DNA from: Chlorokybus atmophyticus
Taxonomy: Eukaryota; Plantae; Mesostigma and Chlorokybus algae
Assembly (NCBI GenBank): GCA_009103225.1
Contig: RHPI01003169.1
Coordinates: 228,006 to 280,303 of the forward strand
DNA: 52,298 bases
Direction of reading: 5' to 3'
Below are positions 19,266-51,799 of this stretch, one piece after another (within the stretch, counting starts at the first letter, position 1; each line of letters opens with the position of its first letter). The translations under genes were made by a program, and so were the position numbers. A model generated the notes under the pieces. The model saw only the letters and a program-made list of their open reading frames with translations, had not been told where the DNA came from and did not search any database.

Positions 19266-19270
19266 ATGCA

Positions 19271-23338: not shown

Positions 23339-23340
23339 AC

Positions 23341-23352: not shown

Positions 23353-23429
23353 TACGGTTGCGGAGGTGCGAGTGTGGTAGCGTTTTAAGCGACGAGGCTG
23401 CGTTTACACTCTACTTATGAAGGAAAGGA

Positions 23430-29310: not shown

Positions 29311-30073
29311 ATCTGCACGTGGAGGTTGCAGCGACATTGCTTGAAGGTGCAGCACTTGTATGGTGGAGACATCGTTGTACGCGTGTTGCAAGTGGGTTGG
29401 CGCTACCATTGACCACCATGGAAGAGTTGGCACTGGAGGTCAGGCATCAATTGTTCCCATTGAGAGCGTGAAGGCCGCACGCGACAAACTTGCAACCTTT
29501 GTACAAAAGGGGTCGGTGATGGCGTACACAGCGGCATTTCAGCGATTAGTGATGTCCATACCCAATATGACCGAGGAGGAGCAGCTGGACAGGTATACAC
29601 GTGGTTTGAAACCTTTGGGGCGTAAAAAAGTGGAGCTACGGGACCCGAAGACACTCGCGGAGGCTATACGCATCGCGGAGCGTCTCGACGCGTTGTACTT
29701 CAAGTCCACCACAAGAAACATTGACTGGAGGCAAAGGCATGGTAATCAGCCCCGGGGAGGCTTTCAACATGCATGGAGATGAGGAGAACCAAGTTTAGCG
29801 CTTGCCAATTGAGGTGGAGCTGACTCTGGGCCTGCACCAATGGAGGTGGGTGCCGTACACACGCGTGGAAGTGAGGCGAAGCACGGCGGACGTGGTGAAA
29901 GAGGTAAAGGGGTGCGCAAGTATTATGCGTGTGGGTCGACTGAGCATTTGGCGTTTGGATGCCCCAAACGAAGCACGCAAAGGCCAACACCGGATGGCAA
30001 CCCTCGCCGTGATCGTCGCGTCAACATCATGGAGCAAATTGGCGTGGAGCAGGAAAACGACTTCCCCCAGTAG
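29311..30073 (+). pseudogene. gag: gag of A, 3' part with CCHC knuckle remnant
   Basis: LHVEVAATLLEGAALVWWRHRC, EEEQLDRYTRGLKP, YYACGSTEHLAFGC, ENDFPQ*. Confidence 0.92.
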
Positions 30074-33000
30074 GTGAGGAGGCCACTGCTGGGGATAGGA
30101 AGGAGCCTCGTGCACGGACAAATGCTGTAACATTTCCATTAAGGAAGCAAGAGGAGATGGCTATGAACGCGCCAACGGTGGTGAGTTATGCAAAAGAGGA
30201 GACAACAAAGTACTTCGGGCTTCGAGCACACATTTGCGATGACCAAGGACAATGGAGAGAGTGTAAGCTCGTAATTGATAGCGGTGCCAACATCAACTTT
30301 ATGAGTATTGATATTGCGCGGCGTTACAGTTGGCTTTCGTCATTACAAGGAGGTGAAGTGAAGCTCGCTGATGGAGAGCCACCCTGTGGAGGTAATGGCG
30401 CTGCGTTCATGACCAAAGAGTTGTGCGTTCGCATTGGGAAGATGAAAGTGAACATGCGATTTTGCTGCATCACCCTACGGAACGGGTTTGACAGGATTTT
30501 TGGACTATTGTGGCTATGGCAACATAATCCATTCATTGGAGGAAGCGCGTGCTCTCCATCGAACGAAATGGTGGAGAGTCCATTCAAGCTACGTCGGACG
30601 TCATCGAGGCACGGCACGCACAATCAGGTGGTACGACAATTGACAAGATCTCTTATGTGCAATTGAGGAAGTTATTGTCTCTACGGAAGGCAAAGGCTGC
30701 ATGGTTGTGCGTGGTGCGCGAAAACACTGCAAAGTCAGCACCGGCTGGGTGACGATGTTAAGACGGCTACAATGGACCCCGAGGTGTGTAAACTTGTTAA
30801 AGAATACCAAAATATCATGGTGGACGGACTTCTATTTGATCTACCACCTCCACGGAGCGTAGACCACCGTGTGGAGCTGATTGCGGGCGTGCACAAGCCA
30901 CCGTATCGACCCGTATACAAGTTGTCACCTTTGGAGCTGGAAGAGGCCGAGAGGCAGGTGGCGGGCTTGCTAAAGAGAGGCTACATCAGGCCTAGTAAGT
31001 CCCCTTATGGTGCACCTATTTTGTTTGTACGGAAGAAGAACGGGAGCTTGCGCATGTGCGTCGACTACCGAGCTCGCAACTACATGACGAAGAGGAATTG
31101 CTTTCCACTCCCACGTATCGACGAGTTGCTATAGCAATTGCAAGGTGCGCAGTACTTCACAACACTTGATCTTGCTTAAGGTTATCACCAAATCCGCATC
31201 GCCCCCGAGGATGTGGAGAAAACAGCTTTAACCACACGTCATGGGCACTACGAGTGGTTGGTTATGTCCTTCGGACTTACGAACGCGCCGGCAACATTTC
31301 AAACACTAATGAACAGCGTTTTTGCTGACTTGATTGGTAAGGGAGTCCTCGTGTACCTCGACGACATTTTGGTGTACGCGAAGACAAAGGAGGATCACGT
31401 GGCACTTTTACGGCGCGTGTTGCAGCGTTTGCGCGAACACAAGTTGTACGCCCAGCTACAAAAGTGCAAATTCTTGCTTCAAGAGTGTCGTGTCGCATGA
31501 AGGCATTAAAGCCGGACCCCAACAAAGTGCAGGTGGTGCGCGAGTGGGCTTCCCCGACCAACGTAAAGGAGGTGATGTCCTTTGTAAGCCTTGCGGGGTT
31601 ATATCGCAAGTTTATCATGGGGTTTTCGCGCATAGCTGCTCCCTTAACTGCCCTACTCAAGAAGGGAAAGCCTTGGAGCTGGTCAGCAACATAGGAACAT
31701 GCATTTATTGCGTTGAAGAAGGCGCTGACGGAGGCACTTGTCCTGGCTCACCCCGACATGGAAAAGACATTTATGTTGGCTTGCGACGCGTCCGACACAG
31801 CCATAGGAGCTGTTTTGCAGCAAGACCATGGCAATGGACTTCAACCAGTAGCATTCTTCAGCAAAAAGATGAGTGGTGCGGAGCTGAATTACCCTGTGCA
31901 CGCGAAGGAACTTTTGGCGCATGTAATGGCGCTACGACAATGGCGTTGTTATCTGGAAGGCAAAAAGTTCGTGCTTGAGACGGATCACTCTCCACTGAGG
32001 TACTTACAAACACAACCTCATCCAAGGCGCAGACAAGCACGATGGCTGGAGTTTTTTCAATTTTTTGACTTCGATATCAAGTACAAGCCCGGTATGTCAA
32101 ATGGTGTTGCTGACGCGCTAAGCCGGCTTAATGCAATTGAGGCACTCGCTCAAGTGCAGCCCGAGTGGACCGACCAGATTCGGCAAGTGCTTCAAAAAGA
32201 CACGGAGGGTATGAAAGTGTTGCAAGAGCTGGAAAGTGCAGCTACGGACACTAGTGGGCATTGGTCAATGCGCGCGACGAGCTACTATGGCACCACGGGC
32301 GCTTGTACATCCCCAACGTCGCGCATATCCGTGCGAAATTGCTGAAGGAAGCTCATGACATGCCGATCGCTGGTCACCAAGGGTTAGAGAGGACTTTGGC
32401 AAGCTTGAAGCAGCGTTTTTACTGGCGAGAGATGCATCACGATGTGCGCGACTACGTGGCGTTGTGCGACGCATGCCAAAGGGTGAAGGCAAGCAACCAA
32501 AAGCCAGGTGGGTTGCTTTAAACTCTCCCTGTGCCATTGTCCGAGTGAGAGCAAGTTACCATGGACTTCATCACGGGGCTACCAAAGACAAAAGAAGGGT
32601 ACGACGCTACACTTGTGTTCGTCGACAAAACCAGCAAAATTATACGCTTGGCACCGTGTGGTGAGTCTTGCACGGCACTGGAGGCAGCACGCTTGTTCTT
32701 GATGCATGTGTTTCGTTCTTATGGATTACCACAAAGCATTGTGAGTGATCGCGACCCGCGCTTTACAAGTAAGTTTTGGGAGGCGCTGCATAGTGCACTG
32801 GGTACCACACTGAAGTTTAGCACGGCATTCCACCGCAAACTGATGGGCAAACGAAGCGGGCCAACCGTGTGATTGAGGACATGATGCGTTGCTACGTTAA
32901 CGCGCGACAAGACAATTGGGCGAAGCTGCCTTGAGTTGGTGGAGTTTGCGATCAACAACCACCACAATGCAAGCATAGGTGTCACTCCCTTCCTTATGAA

Positions 33001-33329
33001 CTACGGGCAACAACCATTTACACCGTTGAAGGCATGGACACCGCGACGACACGACGTGCGTGTGGAGGCAGCTAGGGAAAATGACTTCCTCACAAAGTGC
33101 ACGGACATTAATAAGGCAGCTAGGGAGGCGCTATTGATGGCACAAAACAGGCAGAAGCAGTACGCAAACGCGCATCGCCGACACCTCACGTTGCAGGAAG
33201 GCGACATTGTGTTACTCTCCACGAAGCATGTACAGGTGCGTACGGGAGTTCGCAAGCTGAACGAACGGTGGTTGGGACCATTTAAGGTAGCAAAGTTATT
33301 TTGGACATGGCGTACAAGCTGGAGCTACC
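30052..33329 (+). pseudogene. pol: pol of A (protease, RT, RNase H, integrase; many stops and frameshifts)
   Basis: LVIDSGAN, YLDDIL, ACDASD, ETDHSPL, MDFITGLP, DRDPRFTS, WLGPF. Confidence 0.93.
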
Positions 33330-33555
33330 TGTCGGGTCGAGGAGAGTCGAGGGTCACACTGTCTCGGGCCGCTGCACGGAAAAACATGCTTGCTAGCCAT
33401 GTTGTAACATATAGCAAAAGTAAAAGATAACCCAGCTCATATGGCGCGGAGTGCTTGATGGAGCTGCTCCGCTGTCACTGAATTACACGGATATGTGGGA
33501 GCGGGGTTCTCCTTAATGTACATGCTGTGGTGTAGGACACACAGTCAACAAGTCA
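33330..33555 (-). repeat. LTR-like direct repeat, copy 1 (226 bp)
   Basis: Matches 34148-34376; minus strand TGACTTG..CCCGACA. Confidence 0.8.
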
Positions 33556-34147
33556 CTACTATAGGTAGTGCTGTTTACACAGTTCTTTGCATGAGCGGAA
33601 AATGTGTTACACTGTTAAGTGAGGTGAATGAGCAAGCAACACGTGGATACTATGCCATGACTGATGCCAACAAACACATTGCAACCAGGCACACCAAGCT
33701 CACAGCAATGACAAGCATGATGCACACGAGCGTGCACAGGCTCTCACACAGTGAGGGGGTTCTTGGTAACCGGGATGACGTGTTCGCAGTTCAAGTCGTT
33801 TCACAAGCTCGTAGCTTTCTCACTCACAGTGTCACTAGCTGATCCGGTGAACACTGTGACTACTTATACAAGTCAAATCGTGACTGTTCAGAATATAAGC
33901 TAACGGTCATATTGAGGCTATTTTTACAGCAATTACCACTCGTTTTAAAACACAACTTATAACCGAACTCACAACTGAACAGCTACGCGCGGTGCCTATG
34001 TAGGCTATGGTCGTGAGCTACTCTGGAGTCATGACCTAGCTACTGGTCAGTGATGCATGCGCGCTGGTATGCTGGTAGACCGGGCGATGGTTCCGATGTA
34101 GGCATGCTCGATGAAGGCTGGTATGCGCGGGCACTAGGCATGGCAGC

Positions 34148-34376
34148 TGTCGGGTCGAGGGGAGTCGAGGGTCACACTGTCTCGGGCCGCTGCAGGGAAA
34201 GACATGCTAGCCCTGTTGCTGCAACATGTTGTAACATGTAGCAAAAGTAAAATATAACTCAGCTCGTATGGCGCAGAGTTCTTGGTGGAGCTGCTCCGCT
34301 GAAGCACACGGACATGTGGAGGCGATGTTCTCCTTGGTGTACATGCTGTGCTGTAGGACACACAGTCAACAAGCCA
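34148..34376 (-). repeat. LTR-like direct repeat, copy 2 (229 bp), next to the PPT of F
   Basis: Minus strand AGGGGGGGT|TGGCTTG..CCCGACA; matches 33330-33555. Confidence 0.8.
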
Positions 34377-34451
34377 ACCCCCCTAAGTTTCTGGGGAGGT
34401 TTTAGCTCCAGAGCTCAGTTGCTTACGCAGGTGAGGAGGGCCGTTGGTGCG

Positions 34452-34586
34452 GCAATCGTTGCACTAGTACTCCTCCATGGGTATTGCGTCCAATGGGGGC
34501 TCCAGACAATAGCAATGCAGGCCCTTGTCACAGCCATTGCAGAGCATTATGAGTGCGTCGTCGCCGGCGCTGCCGCAGCGTTCACA
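34452..34586 (-). pseudogene. PHD finger at the C terminus of F integrase
   Basis: CERCGSAGDDALIMLCNGCDKGLHCYCLEPPLDAIPMEEY*CNDC = C4HC3, with the usual W replaced by TAG. Confidence 0.88.
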
Positions 34587-34699
34587 GCGTGTGCTGCGGG
34601 CGGGGCGAGCGTGCTGGATGCGCGCAAAGCCAGCTATGCACGGACATGTGGTGACATGGCGTGCAGTTTACCATGTTGTCTTTCAACCTCTCGCCATTT

Positions 34700-35800
34700 T
34701 GACCGAGGAGGTCCAGCACTCATGCGGGGTACACCTTGAGTACCTTGTAGACGGTGCGGCCCACGGAAGTGTCGAGCGTGTCCTTGTTGGCTGCCATGCG
34801 GTAGGCGAAGTCCCCTGCTTGAAACCGTTGTTGGCGCTCCTTGTAGAAGCCGCTCCGCACGCGCTCGTAGCGCAGAGTGTCGCGGTGCTGTGCGATGCGC
34901 AGGTTGTTGAAGGCCATCGGGACGGTGTGTTCGAGCAGCGCGGCGCGTGTGGTAATGTCGTGGTACATCTGGTCAGGACTGTCGAGGTTGTTCACCACAC
35001 GGTCTTAACGAACGGAACGGAACGGAAGCAATGGTGGACGCCCGAACAATAGGTAGTATGGGCTGTACTCGCGCAGAGCCGCCTGCTTCGACAACCGGTA
35101 TCCAAGGGCCACCCACAGAAGGTGGTCGTCCCAGGTGTTCTTCTCATATTCCAGCACGTACTTGCGGAGTGCCTTCTGGATAGTCTGTACTGTCCGCTCG
35201 GCGAGACCGTCGGCTTGGGGATGGTCACGCGAAGTGCGGCGATGAGTGATATAGCATTTGTCCAGCAGGGTGCCGAACTCCCCTCTGGACTCAGTGCCTT
35301 GATCGGTGATGACCTTAGCGCAGCTGCCGAACCGGCTGAGGACATGGGAGAGGAAGGCTTAAGACATCCTTTTGCTGCTCTTGTCAGGTAATGGCACCAG
35401 CTCCACCCATATGAATTTGGAGAAGTGCTTGATTATGACCAGGATGTAACGGTTGCCATGTGCCGAGGATGCCAAGTCTCCCAAGATGTTGAGTCCCCAG
35501 CAATAGAAAAGACCGGAGATGGGGAGAGGGTGCAAGGTGGCGCTGCATGTGTTGAGGCTGGCGCGTATCACGTCACACTATTGGCAGCGATTGACGAACC
35601 CCTGCACCTGTTTGAACAGCCCATACTACCAATATTGCGCCTTTACCAGGCTGACTGTACGCTTGACACCGAAGTGTCTAAGCTCAGTGTGGAGGGCAGC
35701 AATAATACCCTTGCGGGTGGCTGGTGTTGGCACCTCCTTGTCTTCGTCATGGACGCGGCGATAAAGCTTGTCATCCGCCCACCAATAGTGGCGGGTGCGT
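34700..35800 (-). pseudogene. pol: Integrase of F
   Basis: LHTELRHFGVKRT, WGLNILG, KHFSKFIWVELVPL, VITDQG, HPQADGLAERTVQTIQKAL, SPYYLLFGR. Confidence 0.9.
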
Positions 35801-36139
35801 TGATTGACATGGTCTTTCTCGTGCGCTCATGTTGGAGGGAAGCTGGCCACTTTGAAGGAAGGAGAGTGATGGCTTGTCCAGCCATATGTCCTGCCTGGTG
35901 TCGGTGGGTGCCAGCTCGGTGTCGTCGACTTCAATGTCGACCGCGTGGACATTCCCTCGGGGTGTGGTCACTGTGGGGCCGGTAGATTGAAGGGCATGCA
36001 TCTCCTCTGCCGTTCAGGTGGCGGTCGTGATAATCTAACGCTCCGAACGTAACGCGGCAACAGTAAACATGGCCGCTACGGTGGGAGCTGCTGCTGCAGG
36101 GCCGAGCTCGTGCCGAGCTCCGGTTGCATTGTTGGTACT

Positions 36140-36886
36140 GAGGTGAGGGTTGCGACTGAGGCCATCGGCGTCTTGGTTGGTGAGGCCGGCGCGGTGGTCG
36201 ATCTTAAAGTCATACTTCTGCAACAACAGGGCCAGCGAGCGAGTTTCCCTGTCAGATGTTGGTTAGTCATCAACCACTTGAGTGGCTAATGATCGGTGAT
36301 AGGAATTGCCGCCCAAAGAGGAAAGGTCTGAAGAAGGAGATGGCCCACACTGCAGCGAGGCACTCCCCCTCGTAGCTGCTGTAGTTGGCCTCAGCGCTGT
36401 TGTTGCTTCGGCTGGTGTACGACACCACCCGCTCTTTCTTGTTCTCATTGTGCTGCATCAGCACAGCCCCCATCCCAAGCTTGCTCCAGTCGGCGTGGAG
36501 GATGAAGGGCTTGGTGTAGTCAGGGCGTTGCAGGATGGGAGCAGTGGTAAGCCTGCCTTTTAGCTCTTCAAACGCCTGCTGTTGTGGCTCCTTTCACGCA
36601 AACTCCACTTCCTTTTTTAGAACCTCGTTGAGGGGTCGCGTAATCTTTGCGAAGTCCTTTACGAACCGGCGATAGTAGTTGGGTAGGCCCAGAAAGGCGC
36701 GCAGGCGCGTAAGGTCCGTTGGAGCAGGGATAGCTATCAAAGCCTCCACCTTCGCCTGCTGTACGTACACACCGTGGGGCACAATCATGTGCCCTAGGTA
36801 GGGTACCCCGAGTGAAGCAGGTGCACTTGTCGGGGTGCACCGTCATCCCCACCCCCTTGTGTCTCTCCAGCGCCTCCTTGATGTAC
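36140..36886 (-). pseudogene. pol: RT 3' end and RNase H of F
   Basis: RAFLGLPNYYRRFV, HADWSKLGMGAVL, SYEGECLAAVW, HRAGLTNQDADGLSR. Confidence 0.9.
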
Positions 36887-37558
36887 TGTGACGGTGCTCG
36901 TGCCTTGTCACCTGTGAGTTGGTCCAATCAACAACCCTCTCACCAAGACACGGTTTTCACACCGGAACCTTGCCCCCTCTGCCAAGCACACACGCGCGCC
37001 CCGCCACTCGCGTACGCACGCGCATGCGCTCGAAGCTACACACCGACTTGTGTAGTGCCTTGGATCGTCACACAAGCAAGCACACACCAGTGGCCACACG
37101 CTAGCAACCCCTGCTAACCACCACCAAGCTTGCACACCAGAAACTAGGGAGCTAAAGGTTGTATTGCAAATTGTAGAATGTCACTTTTATACCTACCAGT
37201 CTGCACATGCTACTGTCTAGACGATTCTAGCGCTAGACGGAACTAGAAGCTAAGATATTCTTGCAGAATCTTGTAGTACACTTCTAGACCTTTCCAACGC
37301 ACCAAAGATCTCCTAATTTGCTGCTCATATGGTCAAGTTATACTACTTGGCGCCAGGCCCTTCCAGAAATCTGGTCGAGCCCTTCTCGACTGGCCCTCCG
37401 TTTTCTGGCACCTTCCGGACTGGTCTTGGGGCCCCGGTCGATATGCGCGGCAGACTCATAACTCGCCGATATCCGCCACAAGTCATTAGAAACATGTACC
37501 TTACGAATAAGGCCTAAAACGGCCATGAAAATCACAGAATTTGGCCTTGACTGTTACA
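36887..37558 (-). repeat. 3' LTR of B (672 bp)
   Basis: TGT..ACA ends, adjacent PPT, apparently identical to 42728-43399. Confidence 0.95.
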
Positions 37559-40500
37559 CTCCTCCCCCCCCCCAGGTGAGCTTCGTCCTCGAAGCTCGCG
37601 AGGTTGTCGTCGAGCAAGATAGGCACGCACAACGTCTTGAGCATTAGTCAAGTGTGCCTCTGGCTCCCAGGATGCTTCATGCAACGGATAGCCCTTCCAT
37701 TTCACTAAGAACTTGCGTACGCCATGCACAAACTTCTCACCAAGGATGTCTTCTACCTCCCACTCGGGTTCACCGTCTGTGCCAACTTCGGGGGGTGGCC
37801 TTTCTGGCGGTTGTCCTCGATATGCTTTCAGAAGGGAGACGTGAAAAACGGGGTGCACACGCATGGTGTCGGGTAGCTCCAACTTGTACGCCACGTCCGA
37901 GATAACTTTGCTGACCTTAAATGGTCCCAACCAGCGTTCATTCAGCTTGCGAACTCCCGTACGCACCTGGACGTGCTTCGCGGAGAGTAACACAATGTCG
38001 CCTTCCTGAAACGTGAGGTGTCGGCGATGCGCGTCCGCGTACTGCTTCTGCCGATTTTGTGCCACCAATAACGCATCCCTAGCTGCCTTGTTAATGTCCG
38101 CGCACTTTGTAAGGAAGTCATTAGCTGCCTCCACACGCACGTCATGTCGTCGCGGTGTCCATGCCGTCAACGGTGTCAATGGATGTTGCCCGTAGTTCAT
38201 AAGGAAGGGAGTGACACCTGTGCTTGCATTGTGGTGGTTGTTGATCGCAAACTCAACCAACTCAAGCAGCTCCTCCCAATTGTCTTGTCGCGCGTTAACG
38301 TAGCAACGCAGCATGTCCTCGATCACACGGTTGGCCCGCTCCGTTTGCCCATCAGTTTGCGGGTGGAATGCCGTGCTAAACTTCAGTGTGGTACCCAGTG
38401 CACTATGCAGCGCCTCCCAAAACTTACTTGTAAAGCGCGGGTCGCGATCACTCACAATGCTTCGTGGTAATCCATGAGAACGAAATACATGCTTCACGAA
38501 CAAGCGTGCTGCCTCCGGTGCCGTGCAAGACTCACTACACGGTGCCAAGCGTACCATTTTGCTGGTTTTATCGACGAACACAAGTATAGCGTCGTACCCT
38601 TCTTTTGTCTTTGGTAGCCCCGTGATAAAGTCCATGGTAACTTGCTCCCACTTGGACAATGGCACAGGGAGAGGTTGCAGCAACCCACCTGGCTTTTGGT
38701 TGCTTGCCTTCACCCTTTGGCATGCGTCGCACAACGCCACGTAGTCGCGCACATCGCGATGCATCTCTCGCCAGTAAAAACGCTGTTTTAAGCTTGCCAA
38801 AGTCCTTTCCAACCCTTGGTGACCAGCAATGGGCACGTCATGAGCTTCCTTCAGCAACTTCACACGGATATGCGCGACGTTGGGGATGTACAAGCGCCCA
38901 TGGTGCCACAGCAGCCCGTCGCGCATTGACCAGTGCCCACTTGTGTCCGTAGCTGTATTTTTCAGCTCTTGCAACACTTTCATACCCTCCGTGTCTTCAC
39001 GAAGCACTTGCCGAATCTGGTCGGTCCACTCGGGCTGCACTTGAGCGAGTGCCTCAATTGCATTAAGCCGGCTCAGCGCGTCAGCAACACCATATGACGT
39101 ACCGGGCTAGTACTTGATATCGAAGTTAAAAAGTTGAAAGAACTCAAGCCATCGAGCTTGTCTGCGACTCAGATGAGGTTGTGTTTGTAAGTACCTCAGT
39201 GGAGAGTGATCCGTCTCAAGCACGAACTTTTTGCCTTCCCAAAAACAACGCCATTGTCGTAGCGCCATGACTTGCGCTAAAAGTTCCTTCTCGTGCACGG
39301 GGTAATTCAGCTCCGCACCACTCATCTTCTTGCTGAAGAATGCTACTGGCTGAAGGCCGTTGCCATGGTCTTGCTGCAAAACAGCTCCTACGGCTGTGTC
39401 GGACGCGTCGCAAGCCACAATAAATGTCTTTTCCATGTTGGGGTGAGCCAGGACTGGTGCCTCCGTCAGCGCCTTCTTCAACGCAGCAAATGCATGTTCC
39501 TCTGTTGCTGACCAGCTCCAATGCTTTCCCTTCTTGAGTAGGGCAGTCAAGGGAGCAGCTATGCGCGAAAACCCCATGATAAACTTGCGATAATACCCCG
39601 CAAGGCCTAAAAAGGACATCACCTCCTTTACATTGGTCGGGGCAGCCCACTCGCGTACCACCTGCACTTTGTTGGGGTCCGGCTTGATGCCTTCATGCGA
39701 CATAATGTGGCCTAGGTACTCCACCTCTCGAAGCAAGAATTTTCACTTCTGTAGCTGGGCGTACAACTTGTGTTCGCGCAAACGCTGCAACACGCGCCGT
39801 AGAAGTGCTACGTGCTCCTCCTTTGTTGTCGCGTACACCAAAATGTCGTCGAGGTACACGAGGACTCCCGTACCAATCAAGTCAGCAAAAACGCTGTTCA
39901 TAAGCGTTTGAAATGTTGCCGGTGCGTTCGTAAGTCCGAAGGACATGACCAACCACTCATAGTGCCCATAACGTGTGTTAAAAGCTGTTTTCTCCACATC
40001 CTCGGGCGCGATGCGAATTTGGTGATAACCTCCAGCAAGATCAAGTGTTGTGAAGTACTGCGCACCTTGCAATTGCTCCAGCAACTCGTCGATACGTGGG
40101 AGTGGAAAGCAATTCCTCTTCGTGATGTTGTTGAGAGCTCGGTAGTCGACGCACATGCGCAAGCTCCCGTTTTTCTTTCGTACAAACAAAATAGGTGCAC
40201 CATAGGGGGACTTACTAAGCCTGATGTAGCCTCTTTTCAGCAAGTCCGCCACCTGCCTCTCGGCCTCTTCCAGTTCCAAAGGTGACAGCTTGTATACGAG
40301 TCGATACGGTGGCTTGTGCACGCCCTCAATCAGCTCCACACGGTGGTCTACGCTCCGTGGAGGTGGTAGACCAGATGGAAGTCCGTCCACCATGATATCT
40401 TGGTATTCTTTAACAAGTTTACACACCTCGGGGTCCATAGTAGCCGTCTGAACATCGTCACTCAGCTCCGGTGCTGACTTTGCAGTGTTTTCGCGCACCA

Positions 40501-41164
40501 CGCACAACCATGCAGCCTTTGCCTTCCGTGGAGACAATAACTTCCTCAATTGCACATAAGAGATCTGGGCAATTGTCGTACCACCTAATTGTGCGTGCCG
40601 CGCCTCGATGACGTCCGATGCAGCTTGAATGGACTCTCCACCGTTTCGCTCGATGGTGAGCACGCGCTTCCTCCAATTGATGGCTGGATTATGTTGCCAT
40701 AGCCACGGTAGTCCCAAAATCCCATCAAACCCGTTCCGTAGGGTGATGCAGCAAAATCGCATGCTCTCCTTCATCTTCCCAATGCGAACGCACAACTCTT
40801 TGGTCATAAACGCAGCGCCATCACCTCCAGAGGGTGGCTCTCCATCAGCGAGCTTCACTTCACCTCCTCGTAATGACGAAAGCCAACCGTAACGCCGCGC
40901 AATATCAATACTCATAAAGTTGCTGTTGGCACCGCTATCAATCATGAGCTTACACTCTCTCCATCGTCCTTGGTCATCGCAAATGTGTGCTCGAAGCCCG
41001 AAGTACTTTGTTGTCTCCTCGTTTGCATAACTCACCACCATTGGCGCGTTCAAAGCCATCTCCTCTTGCTTCTTTAATGGAAATGTCACAGCATCCGTCC
41101 GTGCATGAGGCTCCTTCCTATCCCCAGCAGTAGCCTCCTCACCTACTGGGGGAAGTCGTTTTCC
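37532..41164 (-). pseudogene. pol: pol of B: protease, RT, RNase H, integrase, chromodomain; two in-frame nonsense codons
   Basis: ORFs 39743-41089, 39107-39736 and 37532-39040 are in one frame, separated by TGA and TAG. C-terminal WEVEDILGEKF..FLVKWKGYP..SWEPEAHL chromodomain. Confidence 0.95.
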
Positions 41165-42165
41165 TGCTCCACGCCATTTTGCTCCATGGTGTTGACGCGA
41201 CGATCACGGCGAGGGTTGCCATCCGGTGTTGGCCTTTGCGTGCTTCGTTTGGGGCATCCGTACGCCAAATGCTCCGTCAACCCACACGCATAACACTTGC
41301 GCACACCTTTACCTCTTTCACCACGTCCGCCGTGCTTCGCCTCACTTCCATCTGTGTGTATGGCACCCACCTCCATTGGTGCAGGCCCAGAGTCAGCTCC
41401 ACCTCCAATTGCAAGTGCTAAACTTGGTTTTCCTCGTCTCCATGCATGTTGAACGCCTCCCCGGGGCTGATCACCATGTCTTTGTCTCCAGTCAGTGTTT
41501 CTTGTGGTGGACTTGAAGTACAACGCGTCGAGACGCTCCGCCATGCGTATAGCCTCCGCGAGTGTCTTCGGGTCCCGTAGCTCCACTTCTTTACACCCTA
41601 AAGGTTTTAAACCACGTGTATACCTGTCCAACTGCTCCTCCTCGGTCATATTGGGTATGGACATCACCAATCGCTGAAACGCGGCCGTGTACGCCATCAC
41701 CGACCCCATTTGCACAAGGGCTGCAAGTTTGTCGCGTGCGGCCTTCACGCTCTCAACGGGAACGAACTGATGTCTGACCTCCAGTGCCAACTCTTCCATG
41801 GTGGTCAATGGTAGCGCCAACCCATTTATAACACGCGTACATCGATGCCTCCACCACACAAGTGCTGCACCTTCAAGCAATGTCGCTGCAACCTCCACGT
41901 GCAGATGCGTGGGCACCTCCGTGAGCTTCAACCAAGACGATACTTGAAAAATCCATTCATCCACTGCATCTCCATCACGTTGACCCTTGAATGGCTTGGG
42001 CTTTGGCACCTTCACATGCACGCGCGAGCTTGATGCCATGGGAATTTGTACACGCGCCATCGCATGCTCATACGCCTAGCGTTGTGCCGCCGCTTGAGTG
42101 TGATGAAGCTCTTCCCTCAGTGCCAAGATGGCAGCTTGAAGCTCTTCCATGCGAGGATCCTCCAT
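41143..42165 (-). pseudogene. gag: gag of B with CCHC knuckle; one nonsense codon at 42076-42078
   Basis: ATG at 42165 is in frame with ORF 41143-42060; CYACGLTEHLAYGC. Confidence 0.92.
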
Positions 42166-42245
42166 CTCCACTAACACACTACACTCCGCTTCCGAATGAA
42201 AAGTGTAAACGCCCACACACTTCCTCTCTCACCTTCGTAAACCGT

Positions 42246-42257
42246 GCTCCGATACCA
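42246..42257 (-). promoter_or_regulatory. PBS (tRNAiMet) of B
   Basis: TGGTATCGGAGC on the minus strand, 2 nt from the LTR end. Confidence 0.93.
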
Positions 42258-42281
42258 GTTGTGACGGTGCTCGTGCCTTGN

Positions 42282-43399
42282 GTTCTCATTGTGCTGCATC
42301 AGCACAGCCCCCATCCCAAGCTTGCTCCAGTCGGCGTGGAGGATGAAGGGCTTGGTGTAGTCAGGGCGTTGCAGGATGGGAGCAGTGGTAAGCCTGCCTT
42401 TTAGCTCTTCAAACGCCTGCTGTTGTGGCTCCTTTCACGCAAACTCCACTTCCTTTTTTAGAACCTCGTTGAGGGGTCGCGTAATCTTTGCGAAGTCCTT
42501 TACGAACCGGCGATAGTAGTTGGGTAGGCCCAGAAAGGCGCGCAGGCGCGTAAGGTCCGTTGGAGCAGGGATAGCTATCAAAGCCTCCACCTTCGCCTGC
42601 TGTACGTACACACCGTGGGGCACAATCATGTGCCCTAGGTAGGGTACCCCGAGTGAAGCAGGTGCACTTGTCGGGGTGCACCGTCATCCCCACCCCCTTG
42701 TGTCTCTCCAGCGCCTCCTTGATGTATTGTGACGGTGCTCGTGCCTTGTCACCTGTGAGTTGGTCCAATCAACAACCCTCTCACCAAGACACGGTTTTCA
42801 CACCGGAACCTTGCCCCCTCTGCCAAGCACACACGCGCGCCCCGCCACTCGCGTACGCACGCGCATGCGCTCGAAGCTACACACCGACTTGTGTAGTGCC
42901 TTGGATCGTCACACAAGCAAGCACACACCAGTGGCCACACGCTAGCAACCCCTGCTAACCACCACCAAGCTTGCACACCAGAAACTAGGGAGCTAAAGGT
43001 TGTATTGCAAATTGTAGAATGTCACTTTTATACCTACCAGTCTGCACATGCTACTGTCTAGACGATTCTAGCGCTAGACGGAACTAGAAGCTAAGATATT
43101 CTTGCAGAATCTTGTAGTACACTTCTAGACCTTTCCAACGCACCAAAGATCTCCTAATTTGCTGCTCATATGGTCAAGTTATACTACTTGGCGCCAGGCC
43201 CTTCCAGAAATCTGGTCGAGCCCTTCTCGACTGGCCCTCCGTTTTCTGGCACCTTCCGGACTGGTCTTGGGGCCCCGGTCGATATGCGCGGCAGACTCAT
43301 AACTCGCCGATATCCGCCACAAGTCATTAGAAACATGTACCTTACGAATAAGGCCTAAAACGGCCATGAAAATCACAGAATTTGGCCTTGACTGTTACA
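42282..43399. repeat. 1118-bp near-exact duplicate of 36441-37558 (F RT/RH flank plus B LTR)
   Basis: Same length and same ORF translations; starts right after a single N; one mismatch seen (36886 C vs 42727 T). Confidence 0.93.
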
Positions 43400-43404
43400 T
43401 GTAC

Positions 43405-44150
43405 TGTAGGTGCTCTTTGTTGCTACGGCTGCAGATGAGAATGTCGTCAATGTAGCATCGCGCGAAGTCCAGCCCCTTCAAGGCTTTGTCCATGACGCGT
43501 TGGAACTTGGCAGGAGCATTCTTCAGTCCGAAGGGCATGAACTTCCACTGGTACAGCTGCCGGTTGCCCCAGAAAGAGGTCTTGTGCTTGTCCTCCTCCT
43601 TAATGGCGATCTAGTTGTACCCTTGTCGCATGTCCAGGATGCTAAAGACGGTATAGTCTCCTACATCATCAAAGATACCCTCTGCAGTAGGCATTGGATG
43701 TTTGTCTTGTTTGGCTTTGTGGTTGAGGGGGCGATAGTTGCCGCACATACGCCGGTCTGTTCAGTTGCCTGCTGAATCCTTCATGGGCATGACGATCGCG
43801 GCCGCAAAGTCCAATGTGGACTCCTCAATCAGCCTTGCACCTCTGCTCCACCAGGTCTTCTGCCAACTTGGAGAGTCGGTACTGTCGTCGAGACATCGGT
43901 GTCCACTAACTCGATGTTCATCAAGTAAACGAAACAAACGCCCAGTTCCTTCACACTGAAGCTGAACTGACTCCTCCACTTGTTGAGGAGAGCCTCAAGT
44001 TGTTCTTGCGTCTGGCCTGTAGCCAGTGGTCCAATGGCATGGGACCAAGAGATAGCGTTGGCGACTACTGGGATGTCCTCCACAATAACTGCTGCCTGCT
44101 CCTCCATATGGGCAATTTCGAGGGCTATGTGTGCCGCTTTGGTCTCTTGC
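43405..44150 (-). pseudogene. pol: RT of F, 5' part
   Basis: WSHAIGP..QLEALLNKWRSQFSFSVKELG, RMCGNYRPLN, ILDMRQGYN, MPFGLKNAPAKFQR, CYIDDIL. Confidence 0.92.
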
Positions 44151-44234: not shown

Positions 44235-45190
44235 TTACCAGACCATGCTGTTCTGGTCCATGGTGCGTCCCAACAGCTGACATTGGTGACTGTCGGTCAG
44301 CGTGGAACCTGTAATACTGCCTGAAGAGAGTTCCATGGCGCGCTCGCGCTCACGTGCGTTGGGTTTCTCCAGTCGGCTTGTGTTGGAATCCAACACCATG
44401 CCTTCGCCTTGGTTGCGGAAGGCGTATGATCCGGGGTAAGACACCAGAGTGGGGAGCGCACCACGTGGTTGACCAGGCTGACTGCACTGGTGAAAGTGCT
44501 GGTGATCATGTCGTGTGACTGGTTGTGCTGTACGCCCAGGGTCCAGGATAGCGTCAACGGTGAAGTCGCGTGGACGACTGCTGTGCAGATATTCAATAGC
44601 AAAGAGATCCTCAACTGTAGCCAGGTTGGTCCACTTGGCGCGGACGCGATGAGCACGGGAGCCATAACGCGCTGCGTTGATGTTGAGAGGGTGTCCCAGT
44701 AAAGAAACATTTGTCGAAAGCTGTTGGCCACGTGATAGCGCTTATCGTCCTCGGAGTGCACATTCTCGATGATGTATCCTCGAGGATTGGACAGCTGGTT
44801 GCTCTGCAGGCTTTTAAAGACACGCAGCAGTTCCAAGATGAGTTGCGAGCGAGGATCAGCGAGTCCTGGGCCTCTGCCGGCTCAGGAGTGTCCCTGACAC
44901 TTCCATCCTGCTATCAGCAGATCGATGTTGCCCACCGCCAGGAGGTGATCCGCAATGATTAAACGGATGGCCTGTGGCAGTGTCTTTAAACTGCCCTGTA
45001 GTGCCGATAGCGGCAACCGCTGCGGGTAGCATTTGTGTAGGTGGCGCAGGTGGTGGCATAAGGCAATTTGTGCGTGTGGTTCAAAGTCACAGTAGAAGTA
45101 CTTGGTGACCGTCGCGCCGGTGTTGAGGACAGCGGCGAGGCCACTACCTATAACTCCAGATAGTTCCAACACGGTGATGCCTTGTTGTCG
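44235..45190 (-). pseudogene. C5 cytosine DNA methyltransferase domain within pol of F
   Basis: Motifs in order: I ITVLELSGVIGSGL; IV DLLIAGWKCQGHS*AG; VI YIIENV; VIII GSRAHRVRAKWTNL; IX NARERERAM; X LLGRTMDQN. Contains one stop and frameshifts. Confidence 0.88.
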
Positions 45191-45432
45191 ACATAATACG
45201 TGAAACTCCACTACTCCAATGGCCACCTGTTGTTGCTCCTGGACCGCAGCTTGGTCCTTGTAGAGAAGGAACCGTGAAGTGAGCCGTGGTCTGGTCAGTA
45301 GTAGATGTGCGACCACTTGTGCGCGCCAGCGGCGTTCCGCTGGTGTTTGGTGGGCCACTTCTTCAGTGGTATCTTTTTGAGATTTGTTGTATGGGATAGG
45401 AGCGTCGTGGTCAGAGTTGTGGGTGACCACCG

Positions 45433-45540
45433 CAGCTGATCTGTCAATGGTTGTCGAAACCGACCTGTGGGTGGCTGTTGCAGCTGACCTGTTAGTGGTT
45501 GGTGACAGCGACCTGTAGGTGGCTGTTGCAGCTGACCTTC
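45433..45540 (-). repeat. 48-nt (16-aa) tandem repeat, about 2.3 copies, in the PR-DNMT linker
   Basis: RSAATATYRSLSPTTN/RSAATATHRSVSTTID/RSAA; CAGCTGA at 45433, 45481 and 45529. Confidence 0.85.
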
Positions 45541-45939
45541 GGTGAGAGTGAGTGCAAGGAGCAGTTCCCTCATTGAGACCCAATCCGTCCCTTTGTGGCA
45601 CGATGTTTGGCCTGCCAACACCGTCTGTTTGAAACACAGCCAGTGGTAGCTACCCCACCAGCACGCTGCTCGCACGCGAGCAAGGCAGTTGGACTGCTAT
45701 CGCCGCACCTGTTCGGTAGCGCGAAGAAGACAATCGTGACATCAAATGCGCCACAGCAAATGTACCCGGTCTATGGCCTTCCAAGCACCAGGGGCGGCAT
45801 TGCTGCGTGGCAAACAGCGCTGGGAGTGCCATGGATGACCTCGGCCATTACCATAGCGAATGCAGTTCCTCCCGCAATGGTGGAGTGCATAGGGCGTCTC
45901 ATGCTTAAAACAATGGATAAGCGATGTGACTACCCCCGT

Positions 45940-46694
45940 GTCATGGAACTATGAGGCTTGAGTGTGGTGCACTGTATTGATGCTTAATGCCACACGGCGG
46001 ACTGATTGTTGAATGTTGCATGGCACATTCAATTGTGGTGACAGTTGTGCAGTGACAGCTGCCTGGTATGGTACACATCCACATGCAAAAGTCTTAGCAT
46101 ACGATTAGCCATGCCTAACTGACTGATATGCCTCAAACTCAGAGTAGTGAGACAAGTACATGTGTCACGTGGAAGTGCAGTAAACGTCACCCAATACTTG
46201 CCCTCTTGTACACTGGCGCTGTCCTTGTCAAACATGGGGAGCAGCTGGACAATGCCTTTTACTTGCTCCAGAGTCACGACATCAAGATGTGGACCCCCTT
46301 GACGTTTTTCCCATTCCAGAGTGATGCACTTTGTGTCGCTCGTCACATCCAGCTTCGTGTACCAGCGGACAAACACGACCTCCTTCCACACGCGCTCGCC
46401 GCTACCACCCCACACCACCACGCGCAGAAAAAGAAGTGCCTGAGCCCACCACGTCACGTTCACACCGTCCTCATCACCTTCCAACTCAAGTGTAGAGAAT
46501 CAAGGCCGCCCATGGAACATCCCAGTTGCGCGCGCCATGCTCACTCCTGATGTCATGTACACCGCTGCGCCTCCGTTCACCACGCGAACAGCACGCCACC
46601 CGTCGACCAACTCCAGTTGTTCCCTCCTCAACCAGTTGTCCAGGGTGGCAGGCAGCTTGTCGGCGAATGGACTCCTCAGGGCGATTTGGCGGCT
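45940..46694 (-). pseudogene. Inserted fragment resembling the C terminus of a Plavaka/CACTA-related transposase
   Basis: RATGMFHGRP*FS..WWAQALLF..VFVRWY..CITLEW..LDVVTLEQVKGIVQLLPMF..YWV. It splits the F protease between DKVRGF and RLSIVL; GTAG flanks both junctions. Confidence 0.55.
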
Positions 46695-46920
46695 ACGCGC
46701 AAATCCGCGCACCTTGTCACGGCTGCCGGTTGCGGTGTCGAGCACGTTTGGGCATGGCATCAGCTCAGCGTCGGTGATGCCAAGGTCGCGTGCGAGGTAA
46801 CGTCCGACGATGACAGGCGGGGCTTCAGAGTCCAGCATCACACGCTTGGGTGCTCGTCCATTGATAGTGACATGCTTGCCTTGGTTGGCGATCATGGCTG
46901 CATTGGCGTGGATGCGCAGC
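46695..46920 (-). pseudogene. pol: Aspartic protease of F, N-terminal part
   Basis: VTINGRAPKRVMLDSEAPPVIVG (DSGA-like), TATGSRDKVRG. Confidence 0.75.
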
Positions 46921-47299
46921 CGCTTTAATCGTCGGTAGCGTGTGCGTGGGGTGACGGCTGCTCCAGGCTCCTCTGATGGAGCCGAGCGTAGTGCGGCAAG
47001 CGCCCCTCGACCAGCTGGGTCTTGCGAACCTCCTTGTCCGCGGCCTAGCCCGAACCGTCCTTGTTCTAGCTGTTGGTATACACGCTGTATACCAACAGCT
47101 AAAACAAGGACGGTTCGGGTGCTGGCGGTGCTGCCTGTGGTTGCCCTGGTTGTGGCGCAGGGGGGTTGCGCCTCCATGTGGCCGGGGTCATTCCTAGTGG
47201 CATAACCAGTGGCTGTTGAGGAAACCCTGAAGGACCGGGTGTTTGTGGGCCTGCCTCGCGTGCAGCCTGTTCTACAACACAAGTCCAGCGTACAGCATG

Positions 47300-48900
47300 A
47301 GCTGCCTCCCTGACCAGTGTACCTTCCTATGTGGCTGTTGAATTGTTGACCACGTCACTCCAGCGGTGATTATGAGGCATGGGCTCGAGATGCACTGCGC
47401 GCAGGAGCCGCGCTCTTATATCGTGGGTAATGGTGGGAACCCTTAAGATCCCTGCCATGTAGGCATCCCATCTGCCATAGACCACCCCCATTTGTAGCAC
47501 CGTTGTTGCTCGTGCCCTCACAATGAGGTAAATCTTTGGGTGTTGGACAAGCTGCTCATAAGTGTTGAAGATATTTCTACATCCAGGCGAACGGTCAGCT
47601 TGCCCTCTGAATAGGAATGGCCGCGAGAAGGCTCTAGGCGAGGACTCGAGTCCGGAGTTTGGCGATCTCCATACCTGCACGAGAATCGTCATAACTCGGT
47701 AGTTACTCCACCGATTTGGACGTTCTAGAGCTCAGTAGATAGCCTTGGAAGTAGCTACAAGATGCTTTTTAAAACGCAGCATTCAAATAAGTGTAGCGAA
47801 CGTGGTAGTTTCTAGAGTAGACAGGTGTATTCCTGGCGGGTATAAAACCCGCGGACATGATGGCAATAGATGGTCTTAGTCTTAGTCTTGTTGTTGCAGC
47901 CTCTTGGCGTTGGTGTTGGGTGGCGTGCACACATGTGCATGTGTAGGTTTGCCAACGCATCTCAACAATAAGAAGCTGCGATGCGTCTGCATTGCCGCTC
48001 TGCTTCCACCCCTGGCAACCTCAATATGGCCTTTTGAGCTCTAAGGTGTCAGTGGCAACCGAGGCAACCTCGTCATAGGCTTGCCGTAGCGAGCGAAGGA
48101 AGGCGTCCAACCATAACAATCTGGTGCCGAATGCGAACAGAGGGACTGCGGGGTGAGTGGTGACTAGCCAAGTCACTACTCTTGCTCGAGCTGCATTGCC
48201 ACCTTCTCGCATCCTCAGCAGCCGTCTCAGGCCGATGCCTTCTTGTCGATGTAGCATGGTTGCTTGTCGCAACAGGCTGTGCAAAGTTGCTGTTCTCCTG
48301 TTGAGCCTAACCCATCCCGCTGTATACACCCTTGTGGTGTGAGGTAGCCTCTCCCTGGATCCCATTGATCGTCAGGCAAGTCTTCCAACAAGGCGGGTAG
48401 CAGCGGGGCAATCACCCCCGTAGTTTGTTGGGCCAGCACCCGCGCCAAGTCAATGTCGGGCTCATCAACGAGAGGTGTCGTGCTGGATGATGGGCCAGCG
48501 ACTGTTGGTTGAAGAACGCCAGCACGAGCATCGGCAAGGGCTTGCGTTCTTGCATTGATTGCTGCCGCTTGGTCATGTCGCCAAGTGAACGCCTGTTCTG
48601 GAGCGGTGTATTGCTCATGAAGCCGAACGGTACTGAGGGGCGTAGTTCTTCGTTGTCACCCAGAGGCATGTCGGCTATATCAGCGATGTGCTGCTGTACG
48701 TTGGGTTGCCGGTCCCAATACGTGTCCAGCGGGCTTGGCTCAAAAGATTCATGACGGACTGGTGTGGGCTGGCGTGGCGCAGTCTTCATGTCATTATGCA
48801 GAGTCAAAAACAGCTGTAGTGCCAACTCCAGTACAACAGGTGTTCTGGCCACAAAGACGCGGTCTCGCATGGGAGGCGCCATGCCGGCGAGGATTTCATC
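47300..48900 (-). pseudogene. Degenerate gag-like region of F
   Basis: Broken, protein-like minus-strand ORFs directly upstream of the protease; no diagnostic motif recognised. Confidence 0.4.
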
Positions 48901-50754
48901 CTCCAGTTGCCGCTGAGTCTGTTCTGGCAGGGTGTGATATTTAAACGGTGGGAAAACGCGATCACTGCGGTCAACGCGAGTTATGCGCTCTTCTCCGCGC
49001 TAAAAAGCAATGGTAGTGGGATCTGCTCAACGCATGATGGTCTCCCATGCGCGCTCAGCCTGCTGACCTCGCGGGACAGCCTAAATGACATCGAGGGCGG
49101 GCAATATATGCAACAGCTTGGACCGCTTTCGGCTGTTGACCATGTTTGATGATGCAGTAACCATAGCGTGTAATCAAGTAGCGTTAAAGGGTAGAGTGGA
49201 TCAGTTAGAACGAGGGTGAGTAGTGGCGGCATGTCTTTGGGGTATGGGGCCTGTCCCGACATCGTACAGCCAAAAACGCGGCCATTTTAACCACTAACTG
49301 CGCTGCAATTGCATCAAATCGCCAGCCAATTTTGGTCGCCATTGGCAAGCAGTTGCCGCTGAGATATTTTTCAACATCTTTTGTGCATCTTTGCAATGAT
49401 TGGCCAATTCGCTGCCTTTTTTCGCAACGACTGTTGACATCGTTGTGATCCCATTTGGTCAAATCCATGCGTGACCAAATGGTGGCCTAACGATGCAATT
49501 TGTGTTTGGTTAAATCTTAACGTGAAGGTAATTCAAGTTAGCATTATTTTTATGGTTGTAACCTCGGCATTGATCACTGAATCTCGCAGCACGTACCGTG
49601 GCGTGAAAGTTACGTTAAATTAAGTTTTGAGACACTTAACTGCAGGTTGCTAGCCATATCGCACCATATTGCACCATATGTACTCCATATTGGAACATAT
49701 GTGCTTCATTTTGCAACACATCAGAGATATTGTTTTGCCACCTTAAATAAGTGTTACATCTTAAATCATTTGGGCCATATGCAACAATATGCCGGCATGT
49801 GCATCGTGCTCATTATTGATATTCATTTGCATATAATCTGAGCAGTTGCATGAAGTGGGGATATGTTTTGGACGGTCGAGATCTATATGTTAAAAGGTCG
49901 AACGGCTGATAGCTGATAATCGCCGCCTAGCCAATGAGCGGCATGCGGGCCGCGCAGCCCGGCAGTCGCGGGTGCCGCATGTGATGCCCTTGGGGGGTGA
50001 GGTTTGCGTGTGCCCTAATGCCGGCCGCCCCGCCCAATCAGCCGCCCCGCTCGTTCCATAATTTACTACATGTACAATATGTGTTTTGCCTTTTTTCTAG
50101 CTTTATTAACGCTTTACGAAGGGCTTTTATAAGCTGTACAAGCGGTGCTCTGCTGCCGCGCGCGACTTCGCCTGCGACCAGCCCGGCAGCTGCCTGCCTG
50201 CGACGTATCTGCTATGTGACGCGGACTGCATAGTCAGCTACCGCTGCGCAGTACCTTGTGACGCGGACTGCCCTGTCAGCTGCCGCGTGAAATGTAGCGA
50301 CGCGCGGGGTAGCAGTCTGCACTTATACAGGTCCTTTAGATTTGGTAAATTATCGACAAAACGCCTGGTTGTTAAGCTGCTTAGTTGTTGTGCTTGTATA
50401 AATAGAAACCCTGTGTAATACAACCAACTCTTGTTTTCTGCTCTCTGCTGTGAGTATGCTGGTGTATGCTTGAGAGAGGCGTGATCCAAGGCACACTACT
50501 GCGTTCTTGCTTGGCGTGGGAAGTAGTAGTGTTCGCGTGCGTGTGCGTGCTCGACGCGTGCGTGCGTGCGCGGGAGAAGACAAGGTTCCGGTGTGAAGAC
50601 TGTGCTCAGCTGCACACATGTGTTGTATGACTTGTGTGCTGTGTATGTGAGCACGAGCATCGTTACAGTGGTATTGGAGCCCTTGGAAGGGTTGAGTTTC
50701 TTGTTTACAAAGGGTATTAACTATATCTTTGGTGTGTGAGGTATTTTTCTGTTT

Positions 50755-51799
50755 ATGGACGCTACCATGGATGATGCACGTGTTGTGGAGCTTCAGCAAG
50801 TGCTGGTCGCTGCTCATGAGGAGCTACATCGTGTTCAAGCATCTGCCCAAGCTCAAGCGGCACAATTTCAAGAAGTCTTGGCACAAGCGCGCGCGGCTAC
50901 GCCTATTGCTGCACCTGTGGCTCTTCCACCAGCCTCTCATCACGTAAAAGTGCCAAAATCAAAGCCACTCAAGGGCCAGAGGGATGGTGACTGCGTCGAG
51001 GAGTGGGTGTTTGCTATCTCTTTATGATTGAAGCTCACCGAAGTACCCGTACATCTCCATATCGATGTGGCTGCTACTTTCTTTGAGGGAGCTGCACTTC
51101 TGTGGTGGCGTCATCGTTGTGCTCGTGTGGAAGCTGGTCTCGAGGTCCCCTTTGTCACCGTGGCTGAGCTGGCCGCTGAGGTGAAGAAACAGTTCGTACC
51201 GGTGCAAAGCATGAAGACAAGACGCGATCAGCTCTACACTTGTGCAAACGCAGTCCGTGATGGCCTACACATCTGCGTTTCAGCGTCTTGTGCTCTCTAT
51301 ACCGAACATGACTGAGGAGGAGCAGCTGGACCGCTATACGCGCGGGTTGAAGACTCTTTGTCGCAAGGAAGTTGAGCTTCGTGACGCCAAGTCTCTTGCG
51401 GAGGCCATTCTCATCGCCGAGCGTAAGGACGTGTTGTACTTCAAGGGTACTGCCAAAGACACTGATTGTGGGCGCTTCAATCAGTCACGGGAAGGTTTGT
51501 ATCGCTTGTACACACCTTTCGAAGCTGGTTCGGGAGCTGCAACAGCTGCGGGGGCTGGCTCGGGACCTACACCAATGGAGTTGGGTGTTTTCCATGCTTC
51601 AAAGAGGGGTGTGAAGGGTCGGGAAGATGCCAAGGCAGTTCGGAAGTGTTGGGAGTGCTCTTTCACTGAACATATGCGCTCCAACTGCCCCATCTTCAAG
51701 GCAAAGTTGGCTGCACATGCACGCAACGCGCGCGGCGGTGGACGTGTGAATACGGTGGAGGAGGAGATGTTGCAATCGGGAAACGGCTCACCTCAGTAG
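50755..51799 (+). pseudogene. gag: gag of E (stop at about 51025, frameshift at about 51240)
   Basis: HVKVPKSKPLKGQRDGD, EEEQLDRYTRGLK, CWECSFTEHMRSNC. Confidence 0.9.

Follow-up and report, generated by a model that had tools for sequence, protein, structure and literature searches.

A probable Gypsy-DNMT3 retrotransposon, now degraded, in the alga Chlorokybus atmophyticus, with a predicted DNMT3-type methyltransferase domain between its protease and reverse transcriptase

The charophyte Klebsormidium nitens is known to have Gypsy elements with DNMT3-like domains in their Pol open reading frame (ORF; de Mendoza et al. 2018, Nat Commun 9:1341, PMC5890265). These Gypsy-DNMT3 elements have Ka/Ks values below 0.2 and repeats in a DIRS-like A-coding-B-A-B arrangement, and the self-methylation of their cDNA has been proposed as the role of the enzyme (PMC5890265). 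When expressed in yeast, the DNMT3 enzymes of the dinoflagellate DIRS elements methylate CG sites de novo; the Klebsormidium Gypsy enzyme gave no methylation in the same assay, a result that the authors themselves call inconclusive (PMC5890265). The Gypsy-DNMT3 elements are still cited as streptophyte in a 2025 paper and a 2026 preprint, and our literature search found no paper that names either Chlorokybus or the chlorophytes for elements of this kind.

The DNA analysed here, referred to as the window, is a stretch of 52,298 nucleotides of Chlorokybus atmophyticus (assembly GCA_009103225.1, contig RHPI01003169.1, positions 228,006 to 280,303). A C5 cytosine methyltransferase domain is encoded on its minus strand, from 45190 to 44238, which agrees almost exactly with the interval of 44235-45190 given by the original prediction, made from the sequence alone. 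Judging by its sequence, the domain is part of pol in a Ty3/Gypsy element of the Gypsy-DNMT3 kind (PMC5890265). The likeness to KnitGypsy-Dnmt3 (PMC5890265) includes a Ty3/Gypsy Pol ORF with a non-rearranged DNMT3-like domain, a streptophyte algal host, purifying selection, and silenced copies. The two differ in host, and the window copy is dead; the comparison is drawn from the text description of the Klebsormidium element rather than from its domain order, and no Klebsormidium protein was found among the named matches of the window domain and its family. The SymbioDIRS-Dnmt3 of Symbiodinium (PMC5890265) also carries a DNMT3-type domain in a retroelement pol, in two domain orders, and with a demonstrated de novo CG methylation activity, but it differs in its DIRS backbone, its tyrosine recombinase, its dinoflagellate host, and its independent acquisition of the domain.

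The methyltransferase domain of the window is divided into three stop-free, collinear pieces, which match adjacent and non-overlapping columns of a family profile built from 14 sequences (A2; hhalign). Piece A (44885-45190, minus strand) covers motifs I-IV and aligns with columns 103-207 (E 1.2e-23), ending in motif IV, GWKCQGHS. Piece A shares 41% identity (E 8e-24) with an ORF that passes PF00145 in L002, one of two loci (L001 and L002) of an ENA assembly that hold degraded copies with the same layout as the window copy. Motif IV is followed directly by an in-frame TGA stop (44882-44884, minus strand), at a position where the relatives have an arginine (GHSRAG), which is consistent with a CGA to TGA change. 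Piece B (44708-44881, minus strand) contains motifs V-VI (ENV) and matches columns 209-265 (E 4.8e-13), ending at a 1-nt frameshift near 44711, before piece C (44238-44711, minus strand, within a stop-free stretch of 44238-44741), which includes motif VIII (AHRVRAKWTN), the target-recognition region, and motifs IX-X (ERERAM and LLGRTMD), and which matches columns 266-422 (E 1.7e-41) and 14 homologous proteins, at 42-57% identity. When both breaks are read through as X, residues 2-319 align with the DNMT domains of intact polyproteins, with 41-44% identity and E ~1e-73. The conserved motifs I, IV, VI, VIII, IX, and X occur in canonical order, both in the placement of the three pieces on A2 and in the alignment of A2 with DNMT3A, which covers the blocks of motif I, motifs IV-VIII, and motifs IX-X. 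Motif I is degenerate, reading LSGVIGSG here versus LFSGIG or LFAGLS in the relatives. The catalytic cysteine is present in motif IV (GWKCQG), as had been predicted, though it is preceded by a lysine, so that the Pro-Cys dipeptide is absent.

The detection of the methylase depended on profile searches, given that raw-piece Pfam and phmmer searches were insufficient. None of the window pieces matched PF00145 in Pfam, even at E<=10, a lack of match that the original prediction had named, formally, as grounds for its own rejection, and pieces A and C had no phmmer match in the PDB. The relatives that align with these pieces do pass PF00145 (the L002 ORF with 41 bits, 1.9e-10; P0068 with 46 bits, 5.9e-12; P0057 with 64 bits), as do 12 of the 14 members of A2 (best 2.6e-17). 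Since the pieces align both with PF00145-positive relatives and with the family profile, the missing match is a problem of sensitivity. The presence of a C5 methyltransferase domain in the region was confirmed.

The class of the methylase was evaluated by comparing A2 with all PDB sequences. DNMT3A/B/C fill the top 29 places (6e-22 to 7e-17), tobacco DRM (2.6e-10), M.HhaI (1e-9), and DRM2 (1e-8) come after them, and a profile of the C-terminal half alone matches DNMT3A/B/C only. The motif order is also non-rearranged, unlike that of DRM and, given this preference of the profile and the order of the motifs, the domain is predicted to be of the DNMT3 type. The cellular DNMT3A and DNMT3B are its best relatives of solved structure (E 6e-22), with the same motif order, and motifs VIII and X of the retroelement domain are DNMT3-like. 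The retroelement domain differs from these enzymes, however, in the absence of the PWWP and ADD domains, in its location inside a polyprotein, and in its motif IV, which is GW(E/P)CQ in the retroelement family versus GSPCN in the cellular enzymes.

The other domains of the element are found on the same strand. The aspartic protease (46692-47075, minus strand) was located by tblastn with residues 596-719 of the polyprotein P0283 and with the protease ORFs of L001 and L002, and has a weak Pfam match (Asp_protease_2, E 0.0034); its active-site triplet is DSE in the window versus DTG in the relatives. The N-terminal half of the reverse transcriptase (RT), up to the YIDD motif, occupies 43401-43841 on the minus strand (Pfam RVT_1, 4.8e-14; tblastn), and is interrupted by a TAG stop at 43611-43613. 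The location of the methylase between the protease and the RT, which had been predicted, is thus confirmed, but the distance to the RT, which was expected to be about 300 nt, is ~480 nt, with the first conserved RT block starting from ~43760. The RT thumb and the RNase H are found at 36273-36881 (minus strand; Pfam RT_RNaseH_2, 1e-33), with frameshifts, and the integrase, with its H2C2 zinc finger and DDE core, at 34651-35844 (minus strand; 44% identity with P0283 residues 1890-2278 in tblastn, E 7e-97; Pfam Integrase_H2C2, 7e-5), with both stops and frameshifts. These domains follow the Ty3/Gypsy order of protease, RT, RNase H, and DDE integrase (Pfam, tblastn). The C-terminus of the integrase lacks a chromodomain, and has instead a PHD finger (34443-34589, minus strand; Pfam PHD, 1.3e-7), which is cut by a TAG at 34464-34466.

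The 3' non-coding end of the element (33329-34376, minus strand) contains two direct repeats, at 34147-34376 and 33329-33555, which are 84-94% identical and lie ~820 bp apart. As two B-like repeats, they are compatible with the B-A-B layout of KnitGypsy-Dnmt3. A search for a 5' copy of these repeats, which would match the 5' repeat A, recovered nothing significant. At 33329, the element stops and abuts a truncated chromovirus of the plus strand. On the 5' side, no gag was found in 46500-51500, either with a profile of the gag regions of the relatives or in a search for CCHC knuckles. The copy thus seems to have lost its 5' part, as neither gag, nor a CCHC knuckle, nor a 5' repeat was found upstream of the protease.

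The original prediction had missed a nested chromovirus that divides the RT (36887-43399, minus strand; Pfam, blastn), an apparently intact element of the gag-PR-RT-RH-INT-chromodomain type inserted in the RT of the DNMT-bearing element. Its two LTRs (36887-37558 and 42728-43399) are 672 bp long, start with TG, end with CA, and are identical to each other, and the insertion is flanked by a 5-bp target site duplication (TSD), TGTAC, at 36882-36886 and 43400-43404. The gag, PR-RT, RNase H, and INT-chromodomain ORFs of this element are all open. The identity of the LTRs reflects either a very young insertion or the assembly of both from the same reads. The prediction had also overlooked a 446-bp duplicate of the host-element sequence 36441-36886, found at 42282-42727, adjoining a single N at 42281 that marks a scaffold gap, and the initial 21 nt of the LTR recur at 42260-42280; the duplication around the N (42260-42727) is probably an artefact of scaffold joining. 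A longer LTR of 1118 bp (36441-37558 and 42282-43399) was considered and rejected, given that tblastn places RT-thumb and RNase H coding sequence of the DNMT-bearing element inside it, and the artefact inflates the apparent LTR.

Once the nested element and one copy of the TSD are removed, the DNMT-bearing element is collinear with residues 596-2350 of P0283, from the protease to the PHD finger (tblastn), and a single tblastn HSP spans the C-terminal half of the DNMT, the RT, and the excised junction. The predicted order of PR-DNMT-RT-RH-INT-PHD is thus real, based on this collinearity across the junction and on the Pfam matches to RNase H, H2C2, and PHD below 36886.

Other mobile elements were observed in the window. 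The plus-strand chromovirus at 22669-33329 belongs to the same family as the nested element (93% identity); it has an interruption from 23704 to 29311, and its integrase is cut off at 33329, with the remaining end absent from the window. A third chromovirus copy, at 11659-19274, shares 80-91% identity with the nested element and has LTRs of ~680 bp. A DIRS-like element at 2141-8099 has a plus-strand ORF of 836 aa with RVT_1 (5e-11) and a minus-strand tyrosine recombinase of 372 aa (Phage_integrase, 6e-7), both of them open; this is probably the element that the original prediction had described as "kangaroo-like".

A profile search of 1.84 billion cluster representatives recovered 1263 family representatives at E<=1e-3, 286 of them at E<=1e-30. 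The mapping of the domains of 322 fetched members revealed two architectures, a PR-DNMT-RT type and an RT-RH-DNMT-INT type. The former, PR-DNMT-RT-RH-INT(-PHD), has roughly 30 members, 26 of which form a single clan in the DNMT tree. The same domain order as in the window is found in intact single ORFs, that is, P0283 (2358 aa), P0167 (2327 aa), P0172 (2138 aa), and P0068 (2188 aa). In P0068, the zf-CCHC, protease, PF00145 (5.9e-12), RVT_1, RNase H, and rve domains were identified, and P0283 also has the PHD finger. The named members of this type are from Closterium sp. NIES-53 and NIES-54, and the DNMT-only fragments of Spirogloea, Marchantia, and Calypogeia have their best typed matches in the same group, which means that every named relative of the PR-DNMT-RT type, counting those placed by best typed matches, is a streptophyte.

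The second type, (PR-)RT-RH-DNMT-INT-PHD, has ~190 members, and those with a named source come from chlorophytes (Scenedesmus, Monoraphidium, Haematococcus, and Cymbomonas). Examples of these elements, such as KAF8056149.1 ("pol", Scenedesmus sp. PABB004) and MNEG_11595 (Monoraphidium neglectum), carry a domain of the same DNMT3-like family, with 35-45% identity, and share with the PR-DNMT-RT type both the PHD finger after the integrase and the variation between Glu and Pro before the catalytic cysteine. They differ in the location of the DNMT, which lies between the RNase H and the integrase rather than between the protease and the RT, and both the DNMT tree and the RT-RH tree set them apart as a clan of their own. 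No paper describing these chlorophyte elements was found in the literature search. Three proteins considered as candidates for the PR-DNMT type (P0260, P0295, and P0051) were rejected, as they are placed among the RT-RH-DNMT-INT members in the DNMT tree and have gaps of 313-643 aa; they are probably of the latter type, with an undetected RT. Some of the RT-RH-DNMT-INT-PHD elements have additional modules, including a Tudor-like PTM/DIR17 domain after the PHD (P0029) and a G-patch after the DNMT (P0021 and others among P0191, P0204, and P0234). One polyprotein of this type, P0215 (1974 aa), bears the NCBI label of a "Minisyncoccia bacterium" MAG, and is probably an algal contig that was binned wrongly.

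The original prediction had regarded the host as a possible chlorophyte, and the element as either a wider distribution or an independent capture of the methylase. The DNMT tree goes against this reading, given that the window falls inside the clan of 26 rows, all of the PR-DNMT-RT type (SH-aLRT 99, from a quick tree search). The RT-RH tree recovers the same bipartition of the two architectures (SH-aLRT 99), and places the window nearest to P0281, P0283, and a Closterium protein. All the named PR-DNMT-RT members are streptophytes, and the window copy thus sits in the group in which Gypsy-DNMT3 was described (PMC5890265). This affinity is in keeping with the host, as Chlorokybus is a streptophyte alga. 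As Gypsy-DNMT3 was already published in 2018 from a streptophyte alga, Klebsormidium, neither a chlorophyte host nor an independent capture is supported.

The region is best explained, with a high degree of confidence, as encoding the methyltransferase domain of a Ty3/Gypsy retrotransposon of the Gypsy-DNMT3 kind that has decayed and lost its 5' part. The main alternative concerns not the origin of the domain, but its activity. The residue before the catalytic cysteine of the C5 methyltransferases is a near-universal proline, and a glutamate at this site is unusual. Across the members P0015-P0322, motif IV is GWECQ in ~2/3 of the cases and GWPCQ in ~1/3, in both architectures and in intact ORFs, while the lysine of the window is a single transition away from Glu. 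With Glu in place of Pro in ~2/3 of the family, the enzyme may have an altered activity, or one that is not directed at DNA. In this case, the domain would be an inherited part of pol that is no longer a DNA cytosine methyltransferase and that, with Glu or Lys for Pro, may methylate RNA, bind DNA, or act as a structural spacer, an alternative that is also consistent with the lack of methylation by the Klebsormidium enzyme in yeast (PMC5890265). The DNMT domain of the related elements is shown to be under purifying selection, with a dN/dS of 0.15 over 147 codons of the C-terminal half (L001 versus L002), in agreement with the Ka/Ks below 0.2 of Klebsormidium (PMC5890265), but this selection shows that the domain has a function, and not which one. 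The family nevertheless retains the cysteine, the ENV, the RxR of motif VIII, and motifs IX-X throughout, approximately a third of its members have the canonical Pro-Cys, and the closest relatives of solved structure are DNA enzymes, all of which make a loss of DNA methylation activity unlikely.

The domain could also be foreign to the retrotransposon, having landed between the protease and the RT as a host DNMT3 pseudogene or as part of another methylase-bearing mobile element. Some features of the window are in line with an insertion of this type, in particular the unusually long spacer between the protease and the DNMT (45191-46691, minus strand; ~500 codons or ~1.5 kb), which has no Pfam match and no recognisable domain, contains 48-nt tandem repeats at 45432-45538, and has no homology that could be found with the relatives. 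Contigs from public sequencing runs also cover the linker stretch 45552-46708 at 100-340x, versus 5-80x for the DNMT, a several-fold difference in depth, with the alignments ending on both sides, and the gag was not found. A more abundant relative may have this stretch in common, or the stretch may represent a repeat of its own. The step in depth resembles an insertion between the protease and the DNMT, but neither a TSD, nor terminal repeats, nor another copy of the stretch was found in the window; at one of its boundaries, there is a shared 8-mer with an offset of ~19 nt, which suggests an indel between copies. The length of the linker itself varies from 33 to 165 aa among the confirmed PR-DNMT-RT members. 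The original prediction had proposed that the methylase would be foreign if it had its own insertion boundaries and were absent from other copies of this RT family, but no TSD or terminal repeats were found flanking the DNMT, and in the intact relatives, with which the window is collinear, the protease, DNMT, and RT are read in a single ORF. As the DNMT and RT-RH trees split the two architectures in the same way, the DNMT appears to have been inherited with the element, and a foreign origin is largely refuted, and highly improbable. The idea that the motif matches are due to chance or to a cross-frame artefact, with no methylase at all, may derive from the lack of PF00145 and PDB matches of the raw pieces, but is refuted by the matches to adjacent columns of one profile (E 1e-23, 5e-13, and 2e-41), the 14 direct homologues with 42-57% identity, and the 1263 family representatives, and is not a serious contender.

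The window copy of this degraded Gypsy-DNMT3 element is dead, as had been predicted, based on its stops, its frameshifts, and the degenerate motif I. The reading frame of the DNMT is broken by the TGA at 44882-44884 and by the frameshift near 44711, while the RT carries a TAG and frameshifts, and the RNase H, integrase, and PHD finger are also broken. Each of the three stops that were examined could have arisen by a transition from the codon of the relatives, with a TGA at an Arg position, a TAG at a Gln, and a TAG at a Trp. The observed/expected ratio of CpG is 0.77-0.80 in the element, slightly lower than the window average of 0.84, and this deficit is too weak to represent a clear footprint of self-methylation. 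Contigs from the public runs are 90-99% like the DNMT region, though they are short, with shares of 0.16 or less, and they indicate the existence of other copies. No RNA runs holding the DNMT region were found among the public sequencing runs.

In the intact relatives, a single polyprotein reads gag-PR-DNMT3-like-RT-RNaseH-INT-PHD. The methylase would thus be produced together with the enzymes of replication, and may be packaged with the RT and the integrase in the particle. Its likeliest job would be the methylation of the cytosines of the nascent cDNA, or of the DNA at the integration site, which would make the new copy resemble the resident DNA of the host. This role in DNA self-methylation, which was part of the original prediction and had already been proposed in PMC5890265, is offered here tentatively, as a possibility that falls somewhat short of an even chance. 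The C-terminal PHD finger probably steers the integration through the tails of histone H3, by analogy with the chromodomain of the chromoviruses. Chromoviruses such as the nested element have a Gypsy LTR-type backbone with a chromatin-reader module at the C-terminus of the integrase, as in the DNMT-bearing element, but their reader is a chromodomain and they have no DNMT, whereas the DNMT-bearing element has a PHD finger and the additional DNMT domain. The copy in the window is capable of none of these steps. It has been silenced and has decayed through transitions, and the chromovirus landed in its RT at a later point.

Retrotransposons that carry the silencing enzyme of their hosts have turned a tool of defence to their own use, which is rare for a parasite. 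The window copy adds a streptophyte alga to the hosts and shows the full PR-DNMT-RT-RH-INT-PHD layout but, being dead and of a kind already published, it has little weight alone, and the wider survey of the family may be of greater importance. In size and in distribution, the family goes far beyond what is stated in the literature that was found, and its two architectures follow the divide between the chlorophytes and the streptophytes among the named members. It is conceivable, with a probability that approaches but does not reach one half, that these elements form one large and old Gypsy lineage, with an integrase-PHD and a DNMT3-like domain, which spans the whole of the green lineage in two fixed architectures, one with streptophyte and one with chlorophyte named members, with the DNMT and the RT having co-diverged, and mostly with Glu before the catalytic cysteine. 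If this is true, either the capture of the methylase predates the split between the chlorophytes and the streptophytes, or the module passed from one Gypsy lineage to another, and the chemistry of the enzyme may be unusual. The non-canonical Glu-Cys of most of the members could also explain why no activity was seen with the only Gypsy enzyme tested.
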